Shown here: positions 5,073 to 55,636 of the stretch, piece after piece
How the letters are laid out: every line of letters starts with the position of its first letter
Numbering within the stretch: position 1 is the stretch's first letter
Position numbers and translations under genes: made by a program
The notes under the pieces: model-generated
What the model saw: only the letters and a program-made list of their open reading frames with translations
Databases searched by the model: none
What the model was told of the DNA's origin: nothing
Virus record (IMG/VR): IMGVR_UViG_3300046665_000548
Location: 62,001-126,000 of that record
Strand: one strand, 5' to 3'
Length of the DNA stretch: 64,000 nucleotides

Positions 5073-5102
5073 CGGACCGAGGAGGACTGCGATAAATAAC
5101 GG

Positions 5103-20329: not shown

Positions 20330-20336
20330 ATAGTCG

Positions 20337-21209
20337 ATGCGATATCATGAATTACTTGGTTTAGACGAAAACGTTGTTTTGGATGAAATGCCAGTTGCTC
20401 ACTATCAGACAGTGGGCAACTTTGATAAGGCGTCCTCGTTCAAACATGAGGATGACAGAAAAATCCTGACGAACCCGAAAGCGATTGCAAAGCTTCATAA
20501 GAAATTTGCGAACAATCGTTTCGATTTCAATATGTTCTTCGTGAACGTTCCGGGTATGGGTAAACACCTGGAGACCGGTGTTGTGGATGCCGAATGGATT
20601 CAGCAGAACATGCCCAAAGTCTGGCCTGAAATTCAACAGAACCTCAGCAACAATTCAATCAATATCATTTTCACAAACAACAGCGCGACGCCTCGTTATC
20701 CTATGACGGCTTGGATCATCGCTCATAGATTTGGCCACGCAGTTGACCGATATAATAAGGGCAAGAAAACGTTCGATGATATTCGCAGAACATGCACGGA
20801 TTACGCTGAACAAATCCTCCAGATATACAACACAAAGCTTCCAGCGGAACAACGATATGGCTACGGATATAACCAACCGGCCAAAGGTGCTCCAACTCGC
20901 ACGAAAACCTTGCACAATCTGTGGAAACAAATCGGCGGCATGAAGTCTGCCAGAGATGGCACACTCCGAGACGAGTACGAGTTCTACCACGAAATGTGTG
21001 CGGAATATCTGATTACGGGCGAGATCAAACTCCGTCCAATTGAAGGCGGTCTGATCACAGGATATTCCTATGGCCGACCACAGACGAGGCACTGCGCCCC
21101 CGGCGACCAGCAGTATCTCAACAGCCTTATCAATGACCTTGGCGAGACGTTGACCAACGAATACGAGAACGTCGTATCGTCAATGGTTGGTAGCATTCTC
21201 GTGATGTAA
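20337..21209 (+). CDS. Late tagged protein with a degenerate zincin-like motif
   Basis: TATAAATA 4 nt upstream; MRYHELLGLDE; WIIAHRFGHA and downstream EFYHEMCAEY. Confidence 0.6.
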   Translation: MRYHELLGLDENVVLDEMPVAHYQTVGNFDKASSFKHEDDRKILTNPKAIAKLHKKFANNRFDFNMFFVNVPGMGKHLETGVVDAEWIQQNMPKVWPEIQQNLSNNSINIIFTNNSATPRYPMTAWIIAHRFGHAVDRYNKGKKTFDDIRRTCTDYAEQILQIYNTKLPAEQRYGYGYNQPAKGAPTRTKTLHNLWKQIGGMKSARDGTLRDEYEFYHEMCAEYLITGEIKLRPIEGGLITGYSYGRPQTRHCAPGDQQYLNSLINDLGETLTNEYENVVSSMVGSILVM

Positions 21210-32885: not shown

Positions 32886-32900
32886 TCTCTAAATAGGTGT

Positions 32901-33983
32901 ATGCCAAGGCTTACACTGTGGAATTCCGGTCGCCGCTCGAACGACTACAACTTCATCGATAAAAGTATTTCGGAGTTCTTCGGAATTTCTGGAACTGCTA
33001 TCTATGTGCACAAGTACATTGGACCGTACGATACCCGAGAACCTAATGAGGATGGCACGCCGTTGACGCCAATCTCTCTAGGCGAAACCTCGATCCAGGA
33101 TGTTCTGTTCTTAGAAAACCGTGACCGCAAGTACGGCAAAGAGGTGTACGAGCTACGCGGTTGTTACAACGTCCAGGATCAAGACTTTGACCTTCGTCAG
33201 TTCGGTGTGTTTCTGACCGGAGATACTATCTTCATCGAATTCCATCTGAATGACATGCTCAATCTTATGGGCCGACGATTGATCGCTGGCGATGTGATAG
33301 AGCTACCGCATCAGCGCGACGACTCGGCCCTGAATGACGCACCTGCCATCAACAAATTCTACGTCGTCCAGGACTCCAGCCGTGCGACTGACGGCTACTC
33401 TCCAACATGGTGGTCACACATCTGGCGCGTAAAGTGCGGCCCGATGACAGACGCTCAGCAGTACAGCGACATTCTCGACAGTGCGCCGAAAGACCCATTT
33501 GGGCGCGACAAGGATGGCAAACTCAAGGATATTCTATCGACCATCGATACCGAGCTTGATATCACTGATCAGATCAACGATGAGGCCATTGCGAACGTTA
33601 GACGCCGTAACTTCGAAACCCGTCAGTTCTACGTCGTTCCTGGCGACGAAACGACCCGTCAAAACCCGTGGATTTTTGCAGGCGACGGTGTTCCTCCGAA
33701 CGGTGCCGCACTAGTCGGTTCTGGTCGAACTTGGCCCGCCAGTCCGGCCGATCAGTCCTACTATCTTCGCACCGACTACGACCCTCATGCGCTCTTCCGT
33801 TTCAGCGGTGGCGTGTGGCGTCAGCAGGAACTCGATTATCGTGGCGAGAACTGGAGCGCGATGGCTCGCGTCTTGAAGACGTTTATCAACAACGATAGCG
33901 AGACCCACATGAAGGACGGCACAGTCTTCAAGGAGAAGCAGCCGCTCTATAAGGCGGTCAAGCTGCGCCCGGACAAGCTCTAA
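32901..33983 (+). CDS. Neck/head-closure protein (T4 gp14-like)
   Basis: IQDVLFLENRDRKY, DLRQFG.FL, GDVIELPH, WWSHIWRVK; late promoter. Confidence 0.75.
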   Translation: MPRLTLWNSGRRSNDYNFIDKSISEFFGISGTAIYVHKYIGPYDTREPNEDGTPLTPISLGETSIQDVLFLENRDRKYGKEVYELRGCYNVQDQDFDLRQFGVFLTGDTIFIEFHLNDMLNLMGRRLIAGDVIELPHQRDDSALNDAPAINKFYVVQDSSRATDGYSPTWWSHIWRVKCGPMTDAQQYSDILDSAPKDPFGRDKDGKLKDILSTIDTELDITDQINDEAIANVRRRNFETRQFYVVPGDETTRQNPWIFAGDGVPPNGAALVGSGRTWPASPADQSYYLRTDYDPHALFRFSGGVWRQQELDYRGENWSAMARVLKTFINNDSETHMKDGTVFKEKQPLYKAVKLRPDKL

Positions 33984-42236: not shown

Positions 42237-42301
42237 AGCAAAAACCTCAAAGTATGAAATCATAAAACACGACGCCAAGGTAAAGCGTCAATAAATACGA
42301 G

Positions 42302-43666
42302 ATGATCGAAAAACTAGACCATTGGTACGACGCGCAGATGCGTCGCTTCCTTGCCCAAATTGTCAGAGCCTTCTCTGGATTTCAATATACAACGGGCTGG
42401 AAGGACGGGCAGGCACCTCAGGCCATGCAGGTTCCGTGTCGTTTGGCGTCAACGGACCGAATGGTCGCGAATATGATCAAAAATGGTTCCGAGAACACCC
42501 TGAATACGGTCCCGATGATCGTCATCTATCAGACTGGTATTGCCGGTCGCCGCCAGGATGTGCAGAACCTTAACCACGTCGATTCCCGTGTTGTTCAAGA
42601 ACGCGCCATCGATCCGGTCAGCGGGAAGTACACACCCCTGAAGGGTCACGGCTACACCGTGCAGAGAATGATGCCACGTCCGTTCGAAATGACGGTCAAC
42701 GTTGATATCTGGACTTCAACCACAGATCAAAAGCATCAGCTATTCGAGCAGATCGCAACCATCTTCTATCCGGACATCTACATCCAGAATTCCGACAATG
42801 CTCTCGACTGGACCGCGATGACCACAATGGAATGGGTTGACTGCCAATGGTCGTCCAGAGCTATTCCGGTCGGCACTAACGACGAAATCGACGTGTTGAC
42901 GATCAGTTTCCGTCTTCCAATCTGGATTTCTCCTCCCGCCAAGGTCATGCAGATGAAGCTCATCGAGCAGGTCATCTCGAACATCCATGACGGTCGCCAC
43001 ACCGACGAGATCAGCGCAGACAATCATCTGTTCCGGCACATCACGACGCCGGGCAATCACTCGGTTCGTGTAGAAAACGGCAAAATACTTCTTCTCGGTC
43101 CAGAGGGGTCTGAGCATGGAGCAGACGGCAACACCTATACGTGGAAAAAGCTCATCGATCTGTACGGCGTTCTACGGCCGACACTGAGCACCATTCACCT
43201 TCTTACTAGTACCGATTTGGACGACCGCACGCGCGATGTCATCGGCACGATCCAGTACGACAACAACAATCCAAACGAAATCTTCTTCCAGATCGATCCG
43301 GACACTTTACCGCAGAATACGATGGACCCAATTAATGCGGTCATCGATCCGCGCGAGCATTGGGCCGGTAAGGGTCTTCCAGCCGCAACAGAAGGTCAGC
43401 GTTATCTTCTTCTGCACAGCATAATGCCAGACTCCATCGCCTGGGGCTCTCTCGAAGCAAACGAGAACAGCATCATTGAGTATCAGAACGGAGAGTGGAT
43501 CGTTGCTTTCGACGGCAAACCAGAAACCAACCCAACGCCACAACGCGTGCTGAACCTCGGTAGCTCACGCCAACTAAAGTTCGCTACCAGCGTTGAAGAC
43601 CAGTGGGAATGGTCGCTCGCCATCGACGGAACCTACTACCCCGGCACTTGGCGTCTCGACCTCTGA
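42302..43666 (+). CDS. Tail terminator/sheath stabilizer (T4 gp15-like) with a C-terminal extension
   Basis: WYDAQMRRF, DIWT...QK.QLFEQI...F.P, LTISFRLPIWISPPAKV. Confidence 0.8.
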   Translation: MIEKLDHWYDAQMRRFLAQIVRAFSGFQYTTGWKDGQAPQAMQVPCRLASTDRMVANMIKNGSENTLNTVPMIVIYQTGIAGRRQDVQNLNHVDSRVVQERAIDPVSGKYTPLKGHGYTVQRMMPRPFEMTVNVDIWTSTTDQKHQLFEQIATIFYPDIYIQNSDNALDWTAMTTMEWVDCQWSSRAIPVGTNDEIDVLTISFRLPIWISPPAKVMQMKLIEQVISNIHDGRHTDEISADNHLFRHITTPGNHSVRVENGKILLLGPEGSEHGADGNTYTWKKLIDLYGVLRPTLSTIHLLTSTDLDDRTRDVIGTIQYDNNNPNEIFFQIDPDTLPQNTMDPINAVIDPREHWAGKGLPAATEGQRYLLLHSIMPDSIAWGSLEANENSIIEYQNGEWIVAFDGKPETNPTPQRVLNLGSSRQLKFATSVEDQWEWSLAIDGTYYPGTWRLDL

Positions 43667-45472
43667 TGCAAATCTCGCAACAGATCGTTCAATAGTCTTG
43701 ACGTTGCGATTGCACAAATTCGCGATTTTACGGAACGAATAACCCAGTTCCGTTCGAATGCGATACCACATGTGACGGCGCGCACCCTGATTGGGATCGT
43801 GCCGCCCACCCTCGCGTAACAAGTCTTCAACAGTCAGGCCGTATTCATCGACAATCTCGTTCATGATCCGATGTCCGCCCGGCATCAGTCGATCCATTTC
43901 GGCGGCCCTCTTGGGATCAACAATCGCAATGTGCAGGCCGCTCTCTTTGTCCCTACACAGATCAGGACGCAGCCGCTGAGGCTCAATGCCCATCACGCGG
44001 CTCACAGTGGCCACCATCGGTTCGCTTACGTAGCCGCGCCTTGCCCACTGGAAAATCGCGCTGTCGTGCTTCACGCCCAACATAGCGGCAAGCCGCTGTC
44101 TGTTTCCAGCACGCGCAATGATCTCATCAAGCGCCGCTTTTGCGACAGAGATATCCTCGGGTTCCCAATGCAGAAACGGGCGAGGCTTCGATGACGAACC
44201 TCGACGCCGGAATTTGATGCGATCAGGAACGGCACCAGGAATATCCTTGTACGTCATACCACGGAGCATCGCCCCCATCGCCTGATTATCGATACCAAGC
44301 TCTTTCTCAAGAGTGCGCATCGTGACTTGACCAGTGGCATACATGCGCCGAGCCCAAATAACCTGCTCGTCAGTTAACAGTCTGAATTTACCCTTCGCAG
44401 AAACAGCTTCCGGCACAAAACCGTAGTGGTTTCCGGACAAGCATTGCTGAATATACCCTTTCGACAGTCCGTGAGCTTCCGCAAGTTGCTGCTGCGTGAC
44501 GTTGCCGTTCTGATAGACGAGCCGCATGAACAGCACTACCTCGGGCTCAAGACTTCTCTCAACTCCGGCAACGATGCGCTCGACCGGATTAGGAATTTTC
44601 GCAAACGGACCATGGCCAAGCAGCGCCTTACGGATCATCTGAGGATGCGAGTTATACTTGTCGGCCATCTCAAACAGAGTGACTTTACCCAGATTCACCC
44701 GGTAGAAATGACGCATTTCCTGGACTTCTCGTACTCGGAAATACGCAGCATTAGAGAGAACTTCCTCTGCCTCAAAACCTTTATATCGGTCGTACGGCTT
44801 TTCTCCCTTGAGCATTTTCTGTATCGTGCGGCGCTTAGTCTTAAGCTCAGCCGCAAGATGATCGAGAGCAATTCTTCCCTTGGCGGCTTCGTAACGCTGA
44901 CGCAAAGCCAAAACTGTATCTTTGTCAAACCTCACAGGAGGTGCGATCTCATCCGCAGTCAAAGCGCCAGGAATATTGCTGAACGAACCATTACCGAGCA
45001 ACAGGCTTTCAAAGTTGCGACCGGTCATGCCGTGCTTTCTTCCGAGCACAGCTAAGTGTCCGCCATACTTACGATAGCGATTACGGATAGCTCTGACCTG
45101 CTTGTCAGAAATGTCCGCAGCACGAAGACGGGGCAAAGCCTCCGCTACCTGCTTGTAAGTCTTCCCCGTCAGCAGATCGCGAACAGCACCCCGCGTAATA
45201 CCGAGTTCGGATTCAAGTTGTTCAGTAGTCTTCTCGCCCTTTTTGAAAGCTAGTCGCGAAGCGATAACCGTTTCGTCACTAAACGATGTGGATGGTAGAA
45301 CCGATACCGGATCAGGAACATGCGCATATGACTTGCCAAGCAGCAGACTATTGACTGAGGATCGAACCATGGAGAGTTCAGCCATAAGTTGCTGAACAGA
45401 CTTTTCTCCATTTTTCACGGCCTGACGCGCCGCCGATACCACCTCGTCGCTGAGTTTGCGCTTGCCCATCAT
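43574..45472 (-). CDS. Multi-HTH DNA-binding protein: 7 HTH repeats, a Cro/YdaS-like HTH and a DnaA C-terminal-like domain
   Basis: Repeats of L(S/T)DE.V..xR....G......LA...G.....I...L.G..Y..(V/I)P; LRPDL; ARRHMWY..R..LGYSF.KIA...NR..TI. Confidence 0.75.
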   Translation of the reverse strand: MMGKRKLSDEVVSAARQAVKNGEKSVQQLMAELSMVRSSVNSLLLGKSYAHVPDPVSVLPSTSFSDETVIASRLAFKKGEKTTEQLESELGITRGAVRDLLTGKTYKQVAEALPRLRAADISDKQVRAIRNRYRKYGGHLAVLGRKHGMTGRNFESLLLGNGSFSNIPGALTADEIAPPVRFDKDTVLALRQRYEAAKGRIALDHLAAELKTKRRTIQKMLKGEKPYDRYKGFEAEEVLSNAAYFRVREVQEMRHFYRVNLGKVTLFEMADKYNSHPQMIRKALLGHGPFAKIPNPVERIVAGVERSLEPEVVLFMRLVYQNGNVTQQQLAEAHGLSKGYIQQCLSGNHYGFVPEAVSAKGKFRLLTDEQVIWARRMYATGQVTMRTLEKELGIDNQAMGAMLRGMTYKDIPGAVPDRIKFRRRGSSSKPRPFLHWEPEDISVAKAALDEIIARAGNRQRLAAMLGVKHDSAIFQWARRGYVSEPMVATVSRVMGIEPQRLRPDLCRDKESGLHIAIVDPKRAAEMDRLMPGGHRIMNEIVDEYGLTVEDLLREGGRHDPNQGARRHMWYRIRTELGYSFRKIANLCNRNVKTIERSVARFASEVETPSAGVVGSVDGERPFPLVFNAGSEL

Positions 45473-46053
45473 TATTCCCAGTTTAGATTGAACGTACTGT
45501 TGTCGAACGCAGTAGTAGCTTGCATCAATCGCGCACGAGTCGCGTCGGCTTCTTCTTTCGAGACGATCTCGAAGTAATGCTTCGCCGCCTTCTGCTTGTA
45601 ATGGTTTTCGATCTTGCCTCCGGGCTGCATCATGCGGTCGTAAGCGTAATTGCGAACAATTTCTCGAACCTCTTCGCGCGCGACAATGATGTCCCATTTC
45701 TTGATGAGAAACGGACCACGCCCGGCAGTAATGGCTTTCGAGACCAAATGAGGAAGCGGCTGAAGCGTCCATTCAGTTCTGGGAGTTGCCTCCCAAACAT
45801 CGTCGCCCTCCCAGTCTTCAAGTACCGATCCATCGTGATTGCCGTCGCGAAAGCTGAAGGTGAATTCTTTGTCGCCAAGCGTGATAATGCCGTGCGCACG
45901 TGCATTAATCGCGTCGATGCGATCATGTTCCAAGATCATGATACAATCGTGCTTTCCCCACTGGCCCGTAGCTTCAGCAAGCATCATCAGCACATCTTCG
46001 CGCTGATCTTCGGGAACATCTCGCTCAAAACGTTCTTGTGCAGTCGTTGTCAT
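45472..46053 (-). CDS. Hypothetical protein
   Basis: GAGGGG RBS; coupled to the next gene. Confidence 0.65.
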   Translation of the reverse strand: MTTTAQERFERDVPEDQREDVLMMLAEATGQWGKHDCIMILEHDRIDAINARAHGIITLGDKEFTFSFRDGNHDGSVLEDWEGDDVWEATPRTEWTLQPLPHLVSKAITAGRGPFLIKKWDIIVAREEVREIVRNYAYDRMMQPGGKIENHYKQKAAKHYFEIVSKEEADATRARLMQATTAFDNSTFNLNWE

Positions 46054-46441: not shown

Positions 46442-46516
46442 GCGAATGTAATTCAGTGGTAGAATGCCTCGTTGCCAACGAGGTCGCCGTGGGTTCGAGC
46501 CCCACCGTTCGCTCCA
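46442..46516 (+). tRNA. tRNA-Gly(GCC)
   Basis: Cloverleaf; anticodon arm CCTCG-TTGCCAA-CGAGG; GGTTCGA; encoded CCA. Confidence 0.92.
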
Positions 46517-46533
46517 GTCAGAAAGTTGTTTGT

Positions 46534-46610
46534 CGCGGGGTGGAGCAGCCCGGTAGCTCGTTAGGCTCATAACCTAAAGGTCGGTGGTTCAAATCCATCT
46601 CCCGCAACCA
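46534..46610 (+). tRNA. Initiator tRNA-fMet(CAT)
   Basis: CGCGGGG start with C1:A72 mismatch; TTAGG-CTCATAA-CCTAA; CCA end. Confidence 0.92.
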
Positions 46611-46655
46611 AACATTGAAAGAAATTGCCGACCTCAAAGGGTTGGCCAAGAGTGA

Positions 46656-46732
46656 CGCGGGATGGAGCAGTCAGGTAGCTCGTCGGGTTCATATCCCGGA
46701 GGTCGGTGGATCGAAGCCATCTCCCGCAACCA
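46656..46732 (+). tRNA. Second, variant initiator-type tRNA-Met(CAT)
   Basis: CGCGGGA start; TCGGG-TTCATAT-CCCGG; T-loop ATCGAAG; CCA end. Confidence 0.85.
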
Positions 46733-46766
46733 TTAAACGGTCTCCTTGTCCCGATAGACAGGAAAT

Positions 46767-46842
46767 GGGGCCTTAGCTCAGTTGAGAGAGCGATTCGCTG
46801 GCAGTGAATAGGTCGTCAGTTTGATCCTGACAGGCTCCACCA
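46767..46842 (+). tRNA. tRNA-Ala(GGC)
   Basis: G3:U70 pair; loop CTGGCAG; atypical T-loop TTTGATC; CCA end. Confidence 0.85.
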
Positions 46843-46850
46843 CATAGTTC

Positions 46851-46925
46851 GGGCTAGTAGTTCAGCGGGAGAACGTTGCCTTTGCAAGGCAAATGTCGGG
46901 GGTTCAATTCCCTCCTGGTCCACCA
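46851..46925 (+). tRNA. tRNA-Ala(TGC)
   Basis: G3:U70 pair; TTGCC-TTTGCAA-GGCAA; CCA end. Confidence 0.88.
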
Positions 46926-47118
46926 CACTGCGCCTGTTTGACCTTCGGGAAGACAGGCTTTTATTACGGATGAGACCGGTTTACACCTACGGGGCCAAAC
47001 CGGGCCAATCTCACCGTAAGGCCCCTGGGGCTTAGTCCAGGCGCGGCCGGAGCGAAATCCGGTAGAGGGCTGCACGGGACGCCGGATAGTCTGCGGAGGG
47101 GTGGGAACCCCTTCCAAT

Positions 47119-47194
47119 GCGAACGTAGCTCAGTTGGTAGAGCGTCTGATTTCCAATCAGAATGTCGTGAGTTCGAATCTCATCGTTCGCTCCA
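47119..47194 (+). tRNA. tRNA-Gly(TCC)
   Basis: TCTGA-TTTCCAA-TCAGA; GTTCGAAT; CCA end. Confidence 0.92.
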
Positions 47195-47734
47195 TTTTTT
47201 CTTCCATATCTCAATGTAATTCCTAACCTTCTCTTCAACGAGAGGGCGGAATTTGCTGTGCCAATACTGATGGTGCGTAGGGCACATAGGTATTAGGTTC
47301 GCTGGATCATTGTTCTGATGATTTTCATCAAGATGATGCACGGAAACGATATTTCTCTCATCACACACTACGCATTGTTTTTCGTGATGCCCGAAGCAGA
47401 TAGTGGTGTATTTTGTGATCTCGATATTTCTTCTGGATGCCCAGTCGAGTCCTGATCCTCTGTGATTTGAGCAACTGCGGCTACAAAAATACTTTTCCTT
47501 TAGAGGATACTGTTTTTCTCTTTCCCTTATCGAAAAATCCTTCGCGCAAGCATGGCACGCTACTGTGTAGGTTTTCATATCCCCAAGCTGTTTGCTGATG
47601 TATCGCCGTTGGGCATCCGCAAGTGCTTGAGTATCGTTCCTCTTTGGATTATGAGAACACCAACGAGAATGATTGGCTTTCTGACTGGTCGAGGAATATT
47701 CGAAGGTTTCGTCGCAATGAGCACATTTCCACAT
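47180..47734 (-). CDS. HNH homing endonuclease with Zn-finger modules
   Basis: CxxC motifs, FCSRSC, VHHLDENHQNNDPANLIPMCPTHH; TAAATA 4 nt upstream. Confidence 0.88.
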   Translation of the reverse strand: MWKCAHCDETFEYSSTSQKANHSRWCSHNPKRNDTQALADAQRRYISKQLGDMKTYTVACHACAKDFSIREREKQYPLKEKYFCSRSCSNHRGSGLDWASRRNIEITKYTTICFGHHEKQCVVCDERNIVSVHHLDENHQNNDPANLIPMCPTHHQYWHSKFRPLVEEKVRNYIEIWKKKWSER

Positions 47735-47836: not shown

Positions 47837-48061
47837 ATGCGTACTGATCTCACCGAAAAAGAGCACAAGTTGCTTCACCTGCTTTGGAATAATGGCCTTA
47901 AGGGTTCTATGTGTTGGATTCGTCGGGATGAAGATGAGGACACGAATTCCAGTTTAACATCTCTCATTGAGCGTGGATTAGTGGCGCGAAAAGATAACGG
48001 CTGGTTCATCTATATTACTGAAGACGGCGAGTTTTTGATTCGCTTCTACGGGAAACCCTGA
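47837..48061 (+). CDS. MRTDL winged-helix paralog 1
   Basis: MRTDLT..E..LL...SLIERGLV...ITEDG...R.YGKP. Confidence 0.75.
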   Translation: MRTDLTEKEHKLLHLLWNNGLKGSMCWIRRDEDEDTNSSLTSLIERGLVARKDNGWFIYITEDGEFLIRFYGKP

Positions 48062-48273
48062 TGCGCACTGATCTAACCGAGATGGAGCACAAAATGCTCT
48101 ACGACATCTCAAATGACACAGGGTATTGTTGGATTAATCGGTATGAGCATCCGAAAGCCAATGCTTCAATGGCATCTCTTATCGAACGTGGCTTAGTGAG
48201 AAAAGAAAAAAGCTTTTTCGTCAAGATCACTGAGGACGGCGCGCTTTTGGCACGTCTCTATGGGAAGCCCTAA
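48061..48273 (+). CDS. MRTDL winged-helix paralog 2
   Basis: Same pattern; TGATG coupling. Confidence 0.75.
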   Translation: MRTDLTEMEHKMLYDISNDTGYCWINRYEHPKANASMASLIERGLVRKEKSFFVKITEDGALLARLYGKP

Positions 48274-48518
48274 TGCGCACTGATCTGAACAACAACGAGC
48301 TTTGGTTGCTTGAATTTATTAATGACTGCGCGAGTGGCCGCTGTCACCCTCCTCGCGCTTACACGATTCGTGAGGTAGTGATTCTTCAAAAAGCACCTCT
48401 TTTAAGGTTGCTCGCGGATGGCATGGTAATAAAACGACCAGGAGAGAATCCCGCTATCGTGGACATTTACCCCACTGACGATGGCTTATTCATGCTTAGG
48501 CTTCATGGGGTGATCTGA
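48273..48518 (+). CDS. MRTDL winged-helix paralog 3 (divergent)
   Basis: Same termini; TAATG coupling. Confidence 0.7.
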   Translation: MRTDLNNNELWLLEFINDCASGRCHPPRAYTIREVVILQKAPLLRLLADGMVIKRPGENPAIVDIYPTDDGLFMLRLHGVI

Positions 48519-48739
48519 TGCGAACTGATCTCACCGATGATGAGCACTGGTATCTTATCTACGTCGATTTTCATTCTGATCAAGGAAGAAAGTTTATCGG
48601 GTGGGTTTCTTCTTTCCACAAATCCGTAGACGCTTTGGTTGAGCGCGGCCTGATCGAGAAAACGGAAGACAAAAACAGTGTTTGGATTAAATCCACTCCA
48701 GATGGCGTACTCTTGGCCCGACTCTACGGAGAGCCGTAA
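48518..48739 (+). CDS. MRTDL winged-helix paralog 4
   Basis: Same pattern. Confidence 0.75.
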   Translation: MRTDLTDDEHWYLIYVDFHSDQGRKFIGWVSSFHKSVDALVERGLIEKTEDKNSVWIKSTPDGVLLARLYGEP

Positions 48740-48951
48740 TGCGCACTGATCTCACCCACCCGGAGCACATGCTACTCCAGGAAATATCGGATCATAGTGG
48801 TTTTGCTTGGCTTTCTCCGGATGATGACAAGGAAACGAATTCTTGCATAGCATCTCTCATTGATCGTGGATTGGTGAGGATACAAAATGTCTGGTTCATC
48901 TATATTACTGATGATGGCGAGCTTTTGCTTCGTATGTACGGAGAGCCCTGA
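48739..48951 (+). CDS. MRTDL winged-helix paralog 5
   Basis: Same pattern. Confidence 0.75.
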   Translation: MRTDLTHPEHMLLQEISDHSGFAWLSPDDDKETNSCIASLIDRGLVRIQNVWFIYITDDGELLLRMYGEP

Positions 48952-49169
48952 TGCGCACTGATCTCACCGAAATGGAGCACAAGTTGCTTCACCACATATC
49001 GCGAGTCGATAAGCAAGGTTTCGCTTGGCTTTCTCGTGACGAAGATGAGGTCACGAATTCTTGTCTGTCATCTCTCGTTGATCGTGGATTAGTGACGAGA
49101 GAAAATGGCTGGTTCATCTCCATTACCGAGGACGGCAAGCTTTTGATTCGTATGTACGGGAAGCCGTAG
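48951..49169 (+). CDS. MRTDL winged-helix paralog 6
   Basis: Same pattern; close to paralog 1. Confidence 0.75.
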   Translation: MRTDLTEMEHKLLHHISRVDKQGFAWLSRDEDEVTNSCLSSLVDRGLVTRENGWFISITEDGKLLIRMYGKP

Positions 49170-49173
49170 CGTC

Positions 49174-49179
49174 TAAATA
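49174..49179 (+). promoter_or_regulatory. Late promoter box TAAATA (representative)
   Basis: Also at 5093, 15864, 19325, 20327, 32890, 42292, 46417 and 53450, and on the minus strand before 30492, 41196, 47734, 58861, 25153 and 19209; resembles the T4 gp55 late promoter TATAAATA. Confidence 0.75.
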
Positions 49180-49184
49180 CTCGC

Positions 49185-49877
49185 ATGAACATGCGCGACA
49201 TCATCACTCTCATTGAAACTCAAGAGCTAGACGAGATTGAACTCGGTGGCCAGTTGGACAGTTCGTTTGTTGATGATCTCGACAAGAAAGATTTGAGCAG
49301 CGATCAGCTTGATCTTTTCGAACCAACCACGACGGGTCAGCCGCGTCTTCCCGCCAATATGAAGTTGATCGGCCGTACGGGTGCGTATTACGTGGCGCAA
49401 CGCACCGGGCCGCTTCCTGGGCAATCTCAATCCAAAGACGAACATCTATACGTGTTCATCAAAGACAATAAAGCTGCGGGCTATATCTGCCTGTATCCGT
49501 GGAGCGGCGATCACGTCAATTATCCGCATCAAGTGAGCTACCAGCCTGATCTGCACGGCAAGGGTCTTCGCACGGCGGCTGTAATGGTTATGCCGGATTT
49601 TCGCGGACAGAACCTTGGCCCGACTATGTACAAATGGGTTTTGGAGAACGTTTGCGACTACATCATTGCCGATGCCACTCACACCCAGGGCGGCGCTGCA
49701 CTCTGGAAGAGAATGCGGGCGATGAAAAATGTGTTTGCGGTAGAGATTTGGAATGCTGACAAATACGAGACGCAACCACGTTGGCACAGGCATGTGTATG
49801 ATCGTGACCACTACATTCCGTGGATCACATTAAGAGGGCGCGAACATAACATTCGGACCGGGGAGGACGACGAATGA
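49185..49877 (+). CDS. Tagged protein with a GNAT acetyltransferase-like domain
   Basis: MNMRDIITLIE tag; VMPDFRGQNLGPTMY acetyl-CoA motif A. Confidence 0.75.
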   Translation: MNMRDIITLIETQELDEIELGGQLDSSFVDDLDKKDLSSDQLDLFEPTTTGQPRLPANMKLIGRTGAYYVAQRTGPLPGQSQSKDEHLYVFIKDNKAAGYICLYPWSGDHVNYPHQVSYQPDLHGKGLRTAAVMVMPDFRGQNLGPTMYKWVLENVCDYIIADATHTQGGAALWKRMRAMKNVFAVEIWNADKYETQPRWHRHVYDRDHYIPWITLRGREHNIRTGEDDE

Positions 49878-50365
49878 ATATGCGCGATCTTATGACGCTC
49901 GTTGAGGCGCGCGGAGGAACGAAGCTTTATCACGGTTCAAAGAAATCGTTTCCTGTTGGGTTTGTTCTTGAGCCTCAGAAAGATGGCTATGTTCACGCCA
50001 ACAGTGGCGATGAGTTTGATGCGCAAATCAAGATCACGGAGCAGTTGCTCGAAAAATTTCGACCATCAGATCAATTATCCAGATACGAGTCTGTTTTCGT
50101 AACAACAACCCCCGCTACTATTGAGTATGCTGGCGGCAGTACAAACCACGTTTATGTGGTCGAGCCACTTGGACCAATCTTTTTCGGCAATCTCTACTGG
50201 TACAGTCAGATCGAGAATGCAGCATTTGATATCGATGACTATGATCCAGATGAATTGCGTTCTTGGGCGCAAAACTACTGGGCTGCTAAACCATCTGGTC
50301 AATCAGAAACGTATGAGTATCGAACCAATAAGGCGCGGATCGTCAAAGAGGTAAAATGGCGATGA
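49874..50365 (+). CDS. Tagged protein with an ADP-ribosyltransferase (Arr-like) domain
   Basis: MNMRDLMTLVE tag; LYHGS..FPVG..L, VFVT, VYVVEPLG, terminal YEY. Confidence 0.65.
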   Translation: MNMRDLMTLVEARGGTKLYHGSKKSFPVGFVLEPQKDGYVHANSGDEFDAQIKITEQLLEKFRPSDQLSRYESVFVTTTPATIEYAGGSTNHVYVVEPLGPIFFGNLYWYSQIENAAFDIDDYDPDELRSWAQNYWAAKPSGQSETYEYRTNKARIVKEVKWR

Positions 50366-50673
50366 ACATGCGCGACCTGATCTCTATCTGTGAAGCTGAA
50401 GACCTCAAAGCGTTGATGGCCAGCATTCGCGAACGTAACAATGCGGCTGAGGTTATGCTGCGGGATGCACTGTCTAACTCCTCACGACTGGCGCTTGTTC
50501 ACCCCGAGGGCAAGAAGATTTTGGTCAGCAAGTCTCTCGACCCCGACTACAAGTGGCGTCTCACTTACTTTGACGACGCTGGTCCATCGGGCCACGTCGA
50601 ATATCGTGATATCACGCGCGAGATGTCCAACGAAATTGCGATGGCTCTCAAGAACGGGTACGTGCGATCATGA
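50362..50673 (+). CDS. Tagged protein with an unknown domain
   Basis: MNMRDLISICE tag; WRLTYFDDAGPSGH. Confidence 0.7.
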   Translation: MNMRDLISICEAEDLKALMASIRERNNAAEVMLRDALSNSSRLALVHPEGKKILVSKSLDPDYKWRLTYFDDAGPSGHVEYRDITREMSNEIAMALKNGYVRS

Positions 50674-51038
50674 AGATGCGCGATCTTATCGACCTTACCG
50701 AGAGTGCAATTACAGCGACATCCATGGATGGACGCAAAGTTATTATTCTAAAGAACCCTTCTCCGGTTGTTCTGCTTGATAGGTTGAGGCGAACCAGGTC
50801 GTTGCGTGGAATTGTAGTTGGCCAAGATTTGTTTTGGGCCAACAGTTACTCTTTGATTCATGTTCAAATAGGCAAAGCCGTTGGTGCTGCTGATGGTTAC
50901 GGGGATGCCCGGCTCGACCTTAAATACAAAGACGGCGGCGCGAAGCTTTTCATTCTACCGCATAATAAATCGTTCGATGAAATTTCTGCACTGCCTCAGG
51001 TACAGAGATTACAGAACTACATTGCGGAGAAGACTTGA
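50670..51038 (+). CDS. Tagged protein with a KNP-RG-W-H domain
   Basis: MKMRDLIDLTE tag; ILKNPS..LRGIV..LFW....LIH. Confidence 0.7.
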   Translation: MKMRDLIDLTESAITATSMDGRKVIILKNPSPVVLLDRLRRTRSLRGIVVGQDLFWANSYSLIHVQIGKAVGAADGYGDARLDLKYKDGGAKLFILPHNKSFDEISALPQVQRLQNYIAEKT

Positions 51039-51670
51039 TGAATATGCGCGATCTCATGAAGCTTTGTGAGGCTCGGTATAGCCCACCCAAGCCACTCGAT
51101 GGCGGCCCGAAGATCGATGATAACAATCAGTACGGTTCATCGGCTCGTCGCCCAATGTTGCTCAGTCTTCCCGCTAGCCAACCGCAAAGTGCCTACCTTT
51201 TTCACGGTGCTCCTCTCGATCATCTCGTGTCTATTTTGCGAGACAATTGTATCAGCACCGGCATCAATTGGCGCGGTGAAGGCGAGCGCGTAGCATGCAC
51301 CCGCAATTGGAAGATAGCGCTAGGCTTTGGAAACCAAGGCGACTTTGATATGTTTCCGGCATTCCTGGTGCTGGACTGGGCTAAGCTAGCAAAGAAGTAT
51401 CACATCGTGTCTTACGAAGACTGTGACATGCATGGAGAGGCATGGAAAACTAGCGAACAGGAAGAAGCTGTCTGCGGAGAGATCACGCCTCTCAGTTCTT
51501 ATTTGATTTCGATCAATGTTGCGCCGGAAGTTCTTCTGGCTGCAATGCAGGATCGCGAATATGCTGATTGGGTTGTTGGCGAAAAGAGTTTCTTCTCGTC
51601 TCCTAGATATTGGTTCGCGGCTCTTCAGAGATTGTCTCAATCTCCAAAACTGAACGCTTGGAGACCCTGA
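51038..51670 (+). CDS. Tagged protein with an ADP-ribosyltransferase-like domain
   Basis: MNMRDLMKLCE tag; YLFHG, VACTRN..IA..F, LVLD, EQEE. Confidence 0.6.
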   Translation: MNMRDLMKLCEARYSPPKPLDGGPKIDDNNQYGSSARRPMLLSLPASQPQSAYLFHGAPLDHLVSILRDNCISTGINWRGEGERVACTRNWKIALGFGNQGDFDMFPAFLVLDWAKLAKKYHIVSYEDCDMHGEAWKTSEQEEAVCGEITPLSSYLISINVAPEVLLAAMQDREYADWVVGEKSFFSSPRYWFAALQRLSQSPKLNAWRP

Positions 51671-52407
51671 TGGATATGCGCGATCTCATGATCCTATTCG
51701 AGGGCAAAGCAGTAAAGGTTGAGATCGATGATCAACTGCCATTCCGGGTATACATCAATCCAACTCCGCAGCAGATGATGTCTGGTCGTCAGCGCGGTTT
51801 GATCGACACTGAAGGCAACCTGTATGTTTGGGACGCTTATCAGGCGACTCACGACAGTGTTGCGAACGAATTGGGTATCACCTGGGAAAGCGCATTGCTT
51901 CTTGAACCGGACAAGATTGAGATCGTTGGCGGCGACAAAAATCTTGAAAACTGGGTTCATATCAATCGAGCATACGGTGGCAAAATGCCTTTTGTTGAAA
52001 ACTCGCAGCAATATCCGGCCGAGACGTTCATGCATGAAGCCGAAGCCAGCTTGGCCCCCATGTCCGGAAACGTCTCCGCAATCCTAATACCTCAAGACGG
52101 CGATACCGTTGAGATTAATCACATCAGCGCGATGCCGATGCGCTCGGGTTGGGGCACAAAAGCAATGAATATTATCGTTTCGTTGGCAGACCGATGCGGC
52201 GTGACCCTAACGCTTGAGGTCGATAATGACTCGGACGATTGGGGCCATGACGACGAAGACGAGAGCCAACCCACTGACGATACAGCATCAATTCCGTCCA
52301 ACGATGATTTGATGGGTTGGTATGGCGGCTATGGATTTTCTGTTGCTGACGGTCTTTCCTCGCGCATTCAGATGGTAAGAAAGCCGAATACGGCTTTACC
52401 AATTTAA
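51670..52407 (+). CDS. Tagged two-domain protein: KNP-RG-WDA-H domain plus GNAT-like domain
   Basis: MDMRDLMILFE tag; INPT..RGLID..VWDAYQATH; RSGWGTKAM..IV.LADRCGVTLTL..LMGWYGGYGF. Confidence 0.7.
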   Translation: MDMRDLMILFEGKAVKVEIDDQLPFRVYINPTPQQMMSGRQRGLIDTEGNLYVWDAYQATHDSVANELGITWESALLLEPDKIEIVGGDKNLENWVHINRAYGGKMPFVENSQQYPAETFMHEAEASLAPMSGNVSAILIPQDGDTVEINHISAMPMRSGWGTKAMNIIVSLADRCGVTLTLEVDNDSDDWGHDDEDESQPTDDTASIPSNDDLMGWYGGYGFSVADGLSSRIQMVRKPNTALPI

Positions 52408-52458
52408 CTTCCCGGTGTAGTGCTTACCGCTTCTCTCAACCCGAGGAGGCTCTACTAC

Positions 52459-53385
52459 ATGAAGTCTAGCAGTTTAGCGTTGATAGACCACACGGCGGTG
52501 ACTGCATTGCAGAATCTGCCAAAGACCCGGAAGATTACTCGGCAAGTCGCCGGGTTCGATGTCGAGGACGTAGTACCGTATACGTCTGATGATATCACAC
52601 AGGGTTTCAAACAAGACGCCGACGCTTTGCGGGCTTCGCTGTCCAGTGCGGGCATCACGCCTCTGGCGGTTATTCCCACGGTCTGGTGGGATCGGATTGT
52701 TACCCGATCCAAGCTGGTCGATTTCGAGCCGTCTGGGAAAGGAACGGTCGGCGTCCATCTCTCCGAATATGCGACGGCAATCAAACGCGGATGGTATAAG
52801 ACGATCTCGTTTTTCGCCACATGGTTTACGTTGGCGTTCGCCGTATCCGCTATTCTCTATCACACCGCTCCGATCAACATGTATGGCGTCGTGTTGCTAC
52901 CTTTGATCCCGACCGTGCTCGCGACTGCGGCGCTGGCCAATTGGTGGGAATCGGCGTGGGCATGGATCGTATCCAGTGTCTACACGATGACGCGCGGCGG
53001 CAACAAACGGCTTCTTGTCGAAATATTGAGAAAGAGCAAGGACGGCTACAGCGCACGGCATGTTGGCGTGACTCTTCCTCGGCCTCCTTCTAACGTCATG
53101 GACATCTTGCTCAAAGCTGATCGTGCACAGATGAGAATGCGCGTGGCGGCAGTTCCGGAAGCGGTTCAGTTGGCACAGAGCCCGCGTCAGCTTATCGCAA
53201 ACGAGGTCAGAGACCAGTGGTCGCAGGAAGCTCTGGAGCGTCGCGAAGCGGCTCGCGTGCGTGCGCTTGATCCGATCATCTACGTCATGAAGGGTTCGGC
53301 GGTGGCCGTGATCGCTCAGTTCGGTGACTTTCCCATCGAGCAGCGCATCGTGGAAGAGGTTGTTCAGAGCCGTCCTGTCGCCTAA
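52459..53385 (+). CDS. Membrane protein (2 TM)
   Basis: GAGGAGG RBS; C-terminal DPIIY...AVIAQFGDFP.E. Confidence 0.7.
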   Translation: MKSSSLALIDHTAVTALQNLPKTRKITRQVAGFDVEDVVPYTSDDITQGFKQDADALRASLSSAGITPLAVIPTVWWDRIVTRSKLVDFEPSGKGTVGVHLSEYATAIKRGWYKTISFFATWFTLAFAVSAILYHTAPINMYGVVLLPLIPTVLATAALANWWESAWAWIVSSVYTMTRGGNKRLLVEILRKSKDGYSARHVGVTLPRPPSNVMDILLKADRAQMRMRVAAVPEAVQLAQSPRQLIANEVRDQWSQEALERREAARVRALDPIIYVMKGSAVAVIAQFGDFPIEQRIVEEVVQSRPVA

Positions 53386-53406
53386 CTACCGAACGATACG
53401 AACACG

Positions 53407-53440
53407 AAAGGGCTGGCCGAAAGGCTGGCCCTTTTTCTTT
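53407..53440 (+). terminator. Intrinsic terminator
   Basis: AAAGGGCTGGCC-GAAA-GGCTGGCCCTTTTT. Confidence 0.75.
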
Positions 53441-53461
53441 TGGCAGTCATAAATACTCACC

Positions 53462-53923
53462 ATGAATATGCGCCATTTCATTTCGCTTTGCGAAAGCCAC
53501 TTGTCAGATGCTTTTGAGGGGATCGACAAGCCAACATTAGTTCTCCCGGCCGGGACCGTTCTTTTTCACGGCACGGATCGCCCGGCCAGTGAGTGGGACC
53601 CGCGTGTTGACCCGATTTGGGGACCGGCATGGTTTGGAGCCGACTTTGAGGTGGCTAACAGTTACGCCAAATTTCAGCGCAGTGGCGAGAATGGCGAGCC
53701 GTACATCATTCAGTATAGCACCAACCGTAGCCTCAAGCTTCTAGAGGCTTCTGCGCCAGAAATTGCGGCGGTGATGGATGAATTGTACGACACCTACATG
53801 ACGGATGAAATCGCGGGTGCCATGCACGATCTTGGCTTCGAAGGCTGGCACATCAAAGATACCGAGGTCATGATCGCGGACGGCAACGCGCTTGATTTCG
53901 TCAAGATATTGAAGGTGCAATAA
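53462..53923 (+). CDS. Tagged protein with an ADP-ribosyltransferase-like domain
   Basis: MNMRHFISLCE tag; LPAGTVLFHGT, AWFG....A..YA, GFEGW...TEVMI. Confidence 0.65.
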   Translation: MNMRHFISLCESHLSDAFEGIDKPTLVLPAGTVLFHGTDRPASEWDPRVDPIWGPAWFGADFEVANSYAKFQRSGENGEPYIIQYSTNRSLKLLEASAPEIAAVMDELYDTYMTDEIAGAMHDLGFEGWHIKDTEVMIADGNALDFVKILKVQ

Positions 53924-54525
53924 TGGATATGCGCTCTCTCATTAGTCTTTGTGAAGACTACTCCGGACCTCCTTTCAAACCACGCAGCAAGTCACCAAAG
54001 TCATTCACGGTTCAGGACAACCTTGTGATTGTCCAGGACAGTGACAAAACCATTTGGGCCTACAACGGAACGCCACGTTCGAACTGGCATCCTGAGGCAA
54101 ATGGCAAAAAGATCGGCGGCGTGCTGCTCCAAGACCATGCTTCCCACGGTGAGGATGCGTGGTCAGTTTATAAGTCGGGCGTCGATAAGCCTTATCAGCG
54201 CAAGGGAGTTGCAAGAGCGCTCTACACGCAAGCCGAACAGAATGCTGCCGCTAAGGGCAAGTCGTTCGTACCATCGGGCTCCGTGTCGGATGATGCATTC
54301 CATTTCTGGAGCAATTTTAGGCCAGAGCGTATTGCAAAGGATGGGCGCAACTGGGCTCAGCATTACGTTGGCAAGCAGGTTCACTTTCAGGATCGCGACT
54401 GGGTAATTACTAGCGCAGCAAGAAGCGACGGAAGATACTTTATGGCGAAACTAGTGAACGGAGACAACACTACGGGTATCCCTCGCCAGATCGTCATCGA
54501 CCAGCTTGGGGATTTCTACAAATGA
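53923..54525 (+). CDS. Tagged protein with a GNAT acetyltransferase-like domain
   Basis: MDMRSLISLCE tag; VDKPYQRKGVARALY. Confidence 0.75.
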   Translation: MDMRSLISLCEDYSGPPFKPRSKSPKSFTVQDNLVIVQDSDKTIWAYNGTPRSNWHPEANGKKIGGVLLQDHASHGEDAWSVYKSGVDKPYQRKGVARALYTQAEQNAAAKGKSFVPSGSVSDDAFHFWSNFRPERIAKDGRNWAQHYVGKQVHFQDRDWVITSAARSDGRYFMAKLVNGDNTTGIPRQIVIDQLGDFYK

Positions 54526-55046
54526 ATATGCGCTACTTGATGAATCTCTGCGAATCTCAAGACCCAGAGATCGAAAAACTTTTAAAGATGGACCCTTTCA
54601 GCAAGGGCAGTGCGTACACTCCGCACTCTCGCGAGAAGCAACTTAAGGCGAAAGAGGCAAGTGCTGCTACGAGAGAATTGAAGGCGATCATCAAGGACGC
54701 AAAACAGTCCGGCGTAGTCATTGAACTTTATCCGTCTGTCCAGACGTACAGCAGCGACATTCCTATGAAATGGATTGAGAACAACTCAGTCAAAGGTACC
54801 GCCGCCAAGTATATGCAGATGATCTGCGATCTCGCAGATCGATACGGACTAGAATTGAACCTGCGCGCGCAGTTGGGAGAGCCGAAACTAGTCGAATACT
54901 ACAAACGCTTCGGCTTCGTTATTTCGCCAGATCAAGAAGCGGCAGTCAAACTTGGTCTATACGGACGAGATGACATCCCAGGAAACAAACTAATCGGAAC
55001 GTCGCCATTTATGTGGCGTCTTCCAAGAACGGAGCAGACCTTATGA
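54522..55046 (+). CDS. Tagged protein with a GNAT-like domain
   Basis: MNMRYLMNLCE tag; KGTAAKYMQMICDLADRYGLELNL..LVEYYKRFGF. Confidence 0.7.
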   Translation: MNMRYLMNLCESQDPEIEKLLKMDPFSKGSAYTPHSREKQLKAKEASAATRELKAIIKDAKQSGVVIELYPSVQTYSSDIPMKWIENNSVKGTAAKYMQMICDLADRYGLELNLRAQLGEPKLVEYYKRFGFVISPDQEAAVKLGLYGRDDIPGNKLIGTSPFMWRLPRTEQTL

Positions 55047-55636
55047 ACATGCGAGACCTGATGAGGCTGTGTGAAGATGCAGCAACGCCATTCCAACCAG
55101 AAGCGCCCGCACCTCAAGACGCCGCGCCAGAACAAACTCCGTTCGAGAAGTGGTTTGCTGGTTCAAAGATTGTCGATGCTTCCGGCAATCCTCTCAAAGT
55201 CTATCATGGAACGTCGAAGGATCAGAATTTTCGGGCGTTCAAGATGAACAAGAACGGTATTTGGTTCACAGCCGATCCCGCCGAAGCGTCTCAATATTCG
55301 GTAGAAAACGACAGCATGGGTCACAAGTACGACAATGGCAAGTTCAATCCCGTGCACACGGCGTCCCGTGTTATTCCCTGCTATGTGCGCGCACTCAAGG
55401 TGATGTACTACGACGTATGGCCGGATCAAATTCGTCTGGCTGATAATTACAAGCGCGCTCAAGGTATCGTGTTCGATCAACTTAGATCGCAGGGTTACGA
55501 TGCCGTAGTTACTGGTGGACTCGTAGTCGCCATTGGAAGCCCGAATCAGATCAAGTCGGCAATCGGAAATCAAAAATTCGATCCATCGAAGAAGAACATC
55601 GATGAGGATGACGACGATCCCAGCACCAAATCCTAA
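55043..55636 (+). CDS. Tagged protein with an ART-PolyVal-like ADP-ribosyltransferase domain
   Basis: MNMRDLMRLCE tag; WFAGSKIVD..GNPLKVYHGT, GIWFT..P..ASQYS, GYDAV, NQIKSAIGN. Confidence 0.75.
   Translation: MNMRDLMRLCEDAATPFQPEAPAPQDAAPEQTPFEKWFAGSKIVDASGNPLKVYHGTSKDQNFRAFKMNKNGIWFTADPAEASQYSVENDSMGHKYDNGKFNPVHTASRVIPCYVRALKVMYYDVWPDQIRLADNYKRAQGIVFDQLRSQGYDAVVTGGLVVAIGSPNQIKSAIGNQKFDPSKKNIDEDDDDPSTKS

Follow-up and report, generated by a model that had tools for sequence, protein, structure and literature searches.

The 64,000-nucleotide stretch of DNA considered here (the window) comprises bases 62,001-126,000 of a 607,744-bp IMG/VR virus record, the genome of an uncultured phage with a GC content of 51.7% and a CheckV completeness of 100%. 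At window positions 49185-55636 lies a cassette of ten genes, arranged in two operons (49185-52407 and 53462-55636), whose products begin with almost the same 11 residues and then diverge into different payload domains. This N-terminal tag, a candidate capsid-targeting sequence (CTS) of the T4 type, is the subject of this paper. The phage is a T4-superfamily myovirus; its large terminase is 61% identical to that of Sinorhizobium phage Phosso, 54% to that of Agrobacterium phage Atu_ph07 and 50% to those of PA5oct-like phages, and the window itself carries recognisable sheath, baseplate-hub and other structural genes.

Organization of the cassette

The genes and sites of the cassette are as follows (window coordinates; ART, ADP-ribosyltransferase).

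49174-49179, + strand: TAAATA late-promoter-like site of operon 1, 5 nt before the ATG at 49185; a leaderless or near-leaderless mRNA is predicted
49185-49877, + strand: tagged gene 1, MNMRDIITLIE and a GNAT acetyltransferase payload, 230 aa (Pfam Acetyltransf_1, 2.7e-5)
49874-50365, + strand: tagged gene 2, MNMRDLMTLVE and a payload of predicted Arr-like ART fold, 163 aa (AF2 pLDDT 93.3; Foldseek matches BC2332 and Arr, 9iaf/2hw2)
50362-50673, + strand: tagged gene 3, MNMRDLISICE and a 92-aa payload without a recognised fold; orthologue in the related contig L091
50670-51038, + strand: tagged gene 4, MKMRDLIDLTE and a basic 111-aa payload without a recognised fold
51038-51670, + strand: tagged gene 5, MNMRDLMKLCE and a possible ART-superfamily payload (Atlas lead)
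51670-52407, + strand: tagged gene 6, MDMRDLMILFE and a payload with a GNAT-like C-terminal half (Atlas)
52459-53385, + strand: untagged predicted membrane protein closing operon 1, with two to three hydrophobic helices by eye
53406-53435, + strand: intrinsic terminator between the operons, 13-bp stem and T-run
53450-53455, + strand: TAAATA late-promoter-like site of operon 2, 6 nt before the ATG at 53462
53462-53923, + strand: tagged gene 7, MNMRHFISLCE and a payload of predicted ART fold, 153 aa (AF2 pLDDT 81.7, Foldseek)
53923-54525, + strand: tagged gene 8, MDMRSLISLCE and a GNAT payload, 200 aa (Pfam Acetyltransf_1, 3.8e-6)
54522-55046, + strand: tagged gene 9, MNMRYLMNLCE and a GNAT-like payload, 174 aa (Atlas)
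55043-55636, + strand: tagged gene 10, MNMRDLMRLCE and an ART-PolyVal ADP-ribosyltransferase, 197 aa (Pfam PF18760, 5.7e-14)

All eight intra-operon junctions are overlaps of stop and start codons, either of 4 nt (ATGA) or of 1 nt (TGATG or TAATG), and the start codons are the ATGs at 50362, 51038, 51670 and 55043 rather than the longer open reading frame (ORF) starts. The ten N-termini read exactly as quoted in an earlier note, made by a model from the window sequence, which had drawn attention to the cassette. That note also described two TAAATA-headed, translationally coupled operons; the promoter-like sites and the overlaps are present, while the end given for operon 1 probably has to be moved. 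The terminator at 53406-53435, a strong one, comes after the untagged membrane-protein gene, which is therefore probably part of operon 1.

The 11-residue tag

Over the ten cassette genes the tag has the consensus M[NDK]MR-x-[LIF]-[IM]-x-[LI]-x-E. The genome-wide scan proposed with the first description was run with a strict regular expression (M.MR.[ILMFV][ILMFV].[ILMFVC][ILMFVCT]E) on the six-frame translation of all 607,744 bp, and with a position-specific scoring matrix (PSSM). The strict pattern gave 14 matches, all of them heading ORFs of 103-253 aa at 3-36 codons after a stop codon and none internal; by our own estimate from composition, chance would give approximately 0.01 genome-wide. 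A nucleotide pattern for the tag core gave 19 matches, against none in a reversed control. The PSSM built from the 14 strict copies added about eight looser ones, again all N-terminal, for a total of about 22. The tag ends in h-x-E (h, hydrophobic; x, any residue) in 21 of these approximately 22 copies, the exception being a loose copy at genome position 316292 which ends in N. All ten cassette tags possess leucine or isoleucine at P3 and glutamate at P1, followed by T, A, S, G or D at P1'.

Third codon positions within the tag vary (AAC/AAT, CGC/CGA/CGT, GAC/GAT, CTN, TGT/TGC, GAA/GAG), as they do across the 12 copies of a related contig (L091, described below), and this synonymous variation indicates that selection acts on the peptide and not on the DNA. 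In both AF2 models that were made (49874 and 53462) the tag forms a short, low-confidence helix that lies outside the globular fold.

Three simpler accounts of the shared N-termini were rejected. A nucleotide-level repeat does not fit the variable synonymous sites. Simple paralogy of the tagged genes fails on their unrelated payloads: with the first 11 residues removed, no pair among the ten is similar at E<=0.01 in BLASTP. Finally, a Sec, Tat or lipoprotein signal does not suit a tag that is short, charged and Glu-terminated.

Head genes and the likeness to T4

Elsewhere in the genome a head module in T4 order was found: portal, a small gp67/68-like core protein, an acidic 363-aa core protein, a gp21-family protease, a scaffold-like protein and the gp23 capsid protein. 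The prohead protease (genome 369555-370202, minus strand) matches PF03420 [1.3e-27] and the gp23-type capsid protein PF07068 [2.5e-93]. The protease itself begins with the 11 residues MLNSASMFLTE, the core proteins begin MKLFE and MRSILE, and within the region of the capsid protein aligned to the T4 maturation site there is ...SRLNE|AATAG, with a conserved L-N-E|A. In the T4 record the corresponding N-termini are MKTYQEFIAE|A (ipII and ipIII), MLKEQLIAE (gp22), MAKINELLRE (gp24), MEGLIE (gp67), MLLIPE (gp68) and MNEPQLLIE (gp21), so that those of the T4 head-core proteins gp22, gp24, gp67, gp68 and gp21 are 6-10 residues long and end in h-x-E. The combination seen in the tag, (L/I)-x-E and then a small or polar residue, recurs in ipII/ipIII, gp22 and gp24 and at the capsid-protein maturation site of this phage.

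In T4 the 10-residue CTS is both necessary and sufficient for a protein to enter the scaffold core, and is removed by gp21 (PMC9026906, PMC8442874). The leader has served to recognise at least ten internal proteins (Ips), and the GmrSD enzyme that is inhibited is a different one for each of Ip1-3 (PMC12373910); T4 Alt, an ART that is packaged, undergoes cleavage at ITE-6 and LTE-619 (PMC5694885). The T4 facts on which the first description had drawn are borne out by this literature (PMC9026906, PMC5694885, PMC8442874, PMC7824862). In length, position and ending the tag is as expected of a propeptide cut by the phage's own predicted protease.

We consider it likely that the tag, M-N-M-R-D-L-(M/I)-x-L-x-E, is a lineage-specific capsid-targeting sequence of the T4 type, carried by mainly enzymatic internal proteins which would be injected with the DNA. 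A packaging role had been proposed in the earlier note, and everything that it predicts at the sequence level was found: a gp21 protease, the appropriate motif end, late-type sites and tags bound to phage lineage. We infer capsid loading, cleavage after Glu11, injection and the host targets of the tagged enzymes from sequence. In the pathway envisaged, a gp55-type sigma factor would act late in infection on the TAAATA sites located 5-6 nt before the first ATG, giving leaderless or near-leaderless polycistronic mRNAs, which would be translated by stop/start coupling (the overlaps themselves are seen directly in the sequence). The helical tag would bind the scaffolding core of the assembling prohead, so that the tagged protein is built into the head, and the gp21-family protease would cut after the invariant Glu of (L/I)-x-E to free the mature enzyme inside the capsid. 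In the following infection these enzymes would be ejected along with the DNA and be active ahead of all phage gene expression. Host proteins or nucleic acids would be modified by the four ART-fold and the four GNAT-fold payloads, in take-over or in counter-defence.

Transcriptional context

Late promoters of T4 carry TATAAATA at -10 and are read by gp55. A gp55-type late sigma homolog is encoded by this genome [tblastn 6.6e-5; phrog_12791 "sigma factor for late transcription", 9.1e-79]. The TAAATA hexamer occurs 210 times genome-wide, approximately as expected from composition; 71 of the sites lie exactly 4-5 nt before the ATG of a gene that looks genuine, the base preceding the hexamer being A, C or G. 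Examples of the arrangement in the window are 49174-49187, 53450-53464, 5089-5105, 20323-20339, 32887-32903 and 42288-42304. TAAATA also stands ahead of the gp67/68-like core gene, a virion structural protein gene and a gp15-like gene and, with an intervening leader, ahead of the sheath and hub genes and a 941-aa gene adjoining the portal. Given these structural genes and the T4 late promoter read by gp55, we infer that the TAAATA sites are late promoters, in which case many late mRNAs would be leaderless or nearly so. The same TAAATA-ATG arrangement is found in three metagenomic relatives (L091, L092 and L094), and sigma-70-like sites show no excess within the cassette.

For group statistics a crude gene call of 972 genes was used, 83 directly behind TAAATA and 889 others. 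An h-x-E within the first 15 residues is present in 45.8% of the former and 18.9% of the latter, compared with 21% of internal windows. A tag-like pattern heads 14.5% of the TAAATA genes and 1.3% of the others, an approximately 11-fold enrichment, and most of the tag-like genes among the others are internal members of TAAATA-headed operons. A motif equally common on early genes had been named beforehand as speaking against packaging, and the enrichment on TAAATA-headed genes is the opposite of this.

We might ask at this point whether the constraint lies in the nucleic acid, as a translation-initiation or re-initiation element or as a recombination site for cassette shuffling, with the peptide as a by-product. 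The first genes are probably leaderless, all junctions are overlapping stop and start codons, the cassette turns over at this locus, and ATGAAYATGCG is fairly constant. This explanation is nonetheless hard to credit: third codon positions are free and the amino acids are kept, the tag stands alike on leaderless first genes and on internal genes preceded by Shine-Dalgarno sequences, and roughly half of the 83 TAAATA-headed genes lack h-x-E in their first 15 residues. Furthermore, in other lineages, with GC contents from 33% to 61%, the peptide pattern is kept with quite different DNA.

The payloads

The earlier count of four ART-like and four GNAT-like payloads, the rest being without an assigned fold, holds, with a confidence that grades from Pfam through AF2/Foldseek to Atlas. 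Among the ART-like proteins the payload of 55043 matches PF18760 (ART-PolyVal) with 53.5 bits, the cut-off being 31.2 [5.7e-14]; the other three (49874, 53462 and 51038) do not match the Pfam ART-PolyVal model. Comparison of these three with a profile from the ART-PolyVal alignment was weak (12.8%, 68% and 3.5%, respectively), and structure prediction was therefore used instead. The structure comparison with Foldseek that had been suggested was run on 49874 and 53462, and both gave ART folds. The model of 49874, built with 60 homologs, has a pLDDT of 93.3 and matches BC2332 and the rifampin ADP-ribosyltransferase Arr (9iaf/2hw2); its payload is, as modelled, of the Arr-like ART fold. That of 53462 has a pLDDT of 81.7 overall, with tag residues 1-11 below 50, and matches the catalytic C-domain of diphtheria toxin, SAIP, Tne2/Tse6, KptA and a cyanophage A4 pre-ejectosome protein; the modelled payload is a diphtheria-toxin-type ART fold. 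For 51038 the Atlas features and structure lead to Arr-ms/PARP/Tpt1/DUF952, an Atlas lead which makes membership of the ART superfamily possible.

Of the GNAT-like payloads, 49185 and 53923 both pass the Pfam Acetyltransf_1 cut-off. The Atlas language-model and predicted-structure neighbours of 54522 are all GNAT, as are the ten best named Atlas matches of the C-terminal half of 51670; these two are leads to a GNAT-like fold. Catalytic activity of the GNAT payloads is predicted. Searches of Pfam and PHROGs returned nothing for 50362, 50670, the membrane protein at 52459-53385 and most of the tagged genes elsewhere in the genome. All ten tagged proteins are single-domain and 103-245 aa long, and so do not have the giant multidomain form of polyvalent proteins.

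Relatives: tags follow the lineage, payloads recur

Sixty metagenome homologs of the ART-PolyVal payload (55043) were collected, many of them from contigs 0.2-0.55 Mb long. The catalytic domains of these homologs can be aligned well, and their N-termini fall into lineage-specific classes ending in h-x-E: MNMRDLIRLCE, MDIRAAISLVE, MKLIDLFE, MKYTDFYSELLE, MHILLKxLLxE, and MKNFKQFIEE and MKSFIEFIQE. The last two, tags of other lineages, do resemble the T4 CTS. Among homologs with a short N-terminal extension, h-x-E lies within the first 17 residues in 40 of 50. In the 53462 family we find MKLVALLE and MKITRLTLTE, and in the GNAT family of 53923 MRYHDFAYHLNE and MRYHELITE. The Arr-like family of 49874, with 311 representative clusters, occurs in three forms: starting with the domain, with an extension of 12-24 residues, or embedded in proteins of 970-2521 aa. 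The extensions end in h-x-E in 39 of 55 cases (for example MRKWINLVE, MNIRDLMNIVE and MSLRHYINIVE), and one untagged member resides on a phage contig with ordinary Shine-Dalgarno sites and no TAAATA. As an observation apart, the Arr-like ART is also one domain inside proteins of 412-2521 aa (P0082, P0089, P0104 and P0110); its presence inside very large proteins means that the same module exists untagged, tagged and fused.

The converse is seen on whole contigs, where one tag stands before different payloads. L091 (203,940 bp) has a syntenic cassette of 12 MNMRDLITLCE genes in two CTAAATA-headed operons; L094 (GC 61%) has five genes of the MDIRAxIxLVE type behind TAAATAC-N4-ATG; and L093 (GC 33%) carries MKY[KT][DE]FY...E on four proteins, namely an ART, a NUDIX hydrolase and two others. 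Another IMG/VR contig encodes the exact tag on a 785-aa protein together with a PF03420 protease. A scan of IMG/VR for the tag pattern produced 37 matches, mostly by chance or out of frame, with real tags only in L020/L023, L027 and partly L041. As read from these sequences, the tag changes with the phage lineage while the payload stays, and this is the strongest argument for the capsid-targeting reading.

The cassette of L091 contains orthologs of only four of the ten tagged payloads, whereas the untagged membrane protein (54% identical and at the same place) and the downstream genes are 54-86% identical. On this comparison the cassette behaves like a hyperplastic accessory locus, in which frame and tag are kept and payloads are exchanged; it resembles in this the internal-protein loci of the T-even phages.

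The proteins might also enter the prohead and be cut there, acting or being degraded inside it as assembly factors or modifiers, without being injected. The T4 core proteins gp22, gp67 and gp68, with similar N-termini, are destroyed (PMC5694885), and two of the payloads (50362 and 50670) have no recognisable enzyme fold. Eight payloads, however, are compact transferase folds of 15-26 kDa; their homologs are found without a tag in other phages and as parts of injected polyvalent proteins (PMC7824862); the rapid turnover of the cassette fits accessory arms-race genes rather than assembly parts; and T4 Alt is a precedent for an ART that is packaged and injected. On balance a fate confined to the prohead seems improbable.

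Among cultured phages little was found. The cassette DNA had no megablast match in 50,697 phage records, and 49874 no tblastn match in cultured phages; the ART-PolyVal matches in cultured phages lie within larger proteins. Searches of Phosso and Atu_ph07 for the strict tag pattern and for an ART found none. Since these nearest cultured relatives are almost without tags, the virion proteome of Atu_ph07 (PMC6102473) cannot be used as support.

Looser copies and a possible second tag class

Looser versions of the tag had been listed at 5103, 8828 (minus strand), 10939 (minus strand), 12849 and 20337, and all are present as described. Four of the genes concerned are:

5103-6647, + strand: looser tag MTLPSVRDLLTIVE on a methyltransferase-like protein of 514 aa, behind ATAAATA-N4-ATG
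8193-8828, - strand: looser tag MKSLRNHIDLVE, 211 aa
10157-10939, - strand: looser tag MDIRKYLAAVE, 260 aa; this tag type is also that of the relative L094
20337-21209, + strand: second tag class, MRYHELLGLDE, 290 aa, behind TATAAATA-N4-ATG

Among the loose PSSM copies, MRQFITLIE heads a DUF7178 protein of 460 aa and MRDLIAFLE an R2K ATP-grasp protein. The gene at 20337-21209 belongs to a group with MRY[HS]E[IL]..E N-termini, found directly behind TAAATA on unrelated proteins; the others are at genome positions 164076, 178608 and 188012 (minus strand) and 315589 and 346486 (plus strand). This class also heads GNAT and ART homologs in other phages (P0069, P0070 and P0007), and it may be a second class of capsid-targeting tag in the same virion.

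Two further observations concern tag-like sequences in other settings. The 914-aa baseplate-hub/lysozyme-like protein at window 12849-15593 starts MPNSAEQLREWLRLFE and continues with an acidic stretch rich in Ser and Asp; this tag-like N-terminus on a tail protein may be due to chance, or the protein may be processed. Outside the window, at genome 343798-343830 (locus L099), NEMRDLINMME is found 85 codons from the start of an ORF, of which only 40 codons follow it. It is situated a short way ahead of the tagged gene at 344181, and may be the remnant of a decayed or fused tagged gene.

Related N-termini are present on many late genes, more than one might expect to be packaged, and the tag forms a short amphipathic helix separate from the fold. 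Both points would suit a shared helix with another role in the infected cell, be it attachment to one shared partner or chaperone, a signal for degradation or timing, targeting to another compartment, or auto-inhibition. We regard such a role as unlikely. It leaves unexplained the Glu at the gp21-motif position in nearly every copy with a small residue after it, the similar starts of the phage's own head-core proteins and protease, the convergence of other lineages' tags on the form of the T4 CTS, and the association of the tag with late promoters.

Several observations nevertheless weigh against capsid targeting. Apart from its h-x-E end the tag is unlike the T4 CTS, MKTYQEFIAE, and the spacing of hydrophobic residues differs. 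The mature payloads are predicted to be of 10-26 kDa with isoelectric points (pI) of 4.3-9.8, whereas the T4 Ips are basic. In Atu_ph07 and Phosso, loose tag-like N-termini number only 3-4 and the TAAATA-ATG arrangement is missing. The late-promoter role of TAAATA is carried over from T4 and from the nature of the genes downstream. Lastly, h-x-E occurs in about 20% of random 16-residue windows, which leaves the looser copies individually uncertain.

Comparison with known packaging and ejection systems

That an address tag may be combined with variable cargo is already textbook T4 biology. The T-even internal proteins have been known since 1994 to be diverse and to have only the packaging leader in common (PMC3012670, PMC12373910). 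The resemblance to the T4 CTS and Ips (Mullaney & Black 1996; Repoila et al. 1994, as cited in PMC3012670, PMC9026906, PMC12373910) lies in the short leader on unrelated proteins and its (L/I)-x-E end. The two systems also have in common a gp21-family protease with a T4-type head module, clustered loci whose content varies between relatives, and a presumed role as injected accessory proteins, which in the present phage is predicted from sequence. They differ in the tag (MNMRDLMxLxE of 11 residues versus MKTYQEFIAE of 10), in the size of the set (at least 14 to about 22 genes here, ten of them in one cassette), and in the payloads, here mostly of ART and GNAT folds with mixed pI versus small basic nuclease inhibitors. 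In addition, the genes described here are translationally coupled and their promoter sites abut the ATG.

With T4 Alt the tagged ARTs have in common that they belong to a T4-type phage, in whose head they would be carried, and have an N-terminal propeptide, here a predicted one, for gp21 (ITE-6 in Alt; PMC5694885). Alt is a single protein of ~76 kDa which has a C-terminal propeptide too, whereas here there are four small single-domain proteins of ART fold, by family or fold ART-PolyVal, Arr-like and diphtheria-toxin-like. Polyvalent proteins (Iyer et al. 2017, as summarised in PMC7824862) resemble the present set in their ART-PolyVal, GNAT and R2K ATP-grasp domains (the last found elsewhere in this genome) and in their presumed delivery with the DNA, and some proteins of the 49874 family form part of giant polypeptides (970-2521 aa). 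Here each domain is instead a separate small protein with its own tag, and delivery would use the scaffold core and protease and not a large ejection protein. In the phiKZ-like giants (SPN3US, phiKZ and 201phi2-1) many inner-head and ejection proteins are likewise cut by a T4-related prohead protease at x-x-E (PMC5694885); their sites are (S/A/G)-x-E with propeptides mostly of >100 residues, while here, as in T4, the site is (L/I)-x-E, after 11 residues.

A description of such a tag cassette was not found in the literature searched. What appears to be new is a tag family other than that of T4, in wide use among uncultured huge phages; the scale, with ten genes in one cassette and 14-22 or more in the genome in addition to a possible second, MRY class; a cargo that consists mostly of enzymes and has domains in common with polyvalent proteins (PMC7824862); and clear evidence of the same cargo being re-addressed from lineage to lineage.

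Implications

Proteins that are injected together with the DNA act before phage gene expression and decide the first minutes of infection; in T4 they disarm restriction systems. If the capsid-targeting reading is confirmed, a simple rule (a short N-terminal tag ending in the site of the head protease, behind a late promoter) would allow prediction of the proteome that uncultured T4-type phages inject. It would also provide a natural catalogue of candidate take-over and counter-defence enzymes, and new packaging tags with which phage heads could be loaded with foreign proteins, a use to which the T4 tag is already put.

A wider reading is that the huge phages of the T4 superfamily possess a general, lineage-coded tag grammar, M-(x)0-6-R/K-x-h-h-x-h-x-E (together with MRYxEh..E and MKLxxLFE), which loads dozens of single-domain enzymes amounting to several percent of the proteome. 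Modules would swap tags between phages and alternate between untagged forms made after infection, tagged forms that are pre-packaged, and forms fused into polyvalent giants. We see the chances of this as evenly balanced. Were it true, one could read directly from the sequence of uncultured phages which proteins they inject, and this phage would combine the tag system with widespread leaderless late mRNAs (the 71 TAAATA-N4-5-ATG sites).

Other features of the window

Directly upstream of the cassette (47837-49169) are six tandem paralogs of 70-81 aa with MRTDL(T/N)..E starts and full-length similarity. No TAAATA precedes the first copy, and searches of Pfam and PHROGs gave no family match. As full-length paralogs without TAAATA upstream, they were ruled out as part of the tag system. 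An ORF of 732 aa (43574-45772, minus strand) consists of many repeated helix-turn-helix-like modules, with several weak PHROG matches to repressors and regulators along its length. At 46442-47194 there is a cluster of six tRNAs (Gly-GCC, two Met, Ala-GGC, Ala-UGC and Gly-UCC). Beside it lies a Cys/His-rich ORF (47180-47734, minus strand) which by eye is HNH endonuclease-like; it shares the 15 nt at its 3' end with the last tRNA, and is headed by an ATAAATA-N4-ATG of its own.

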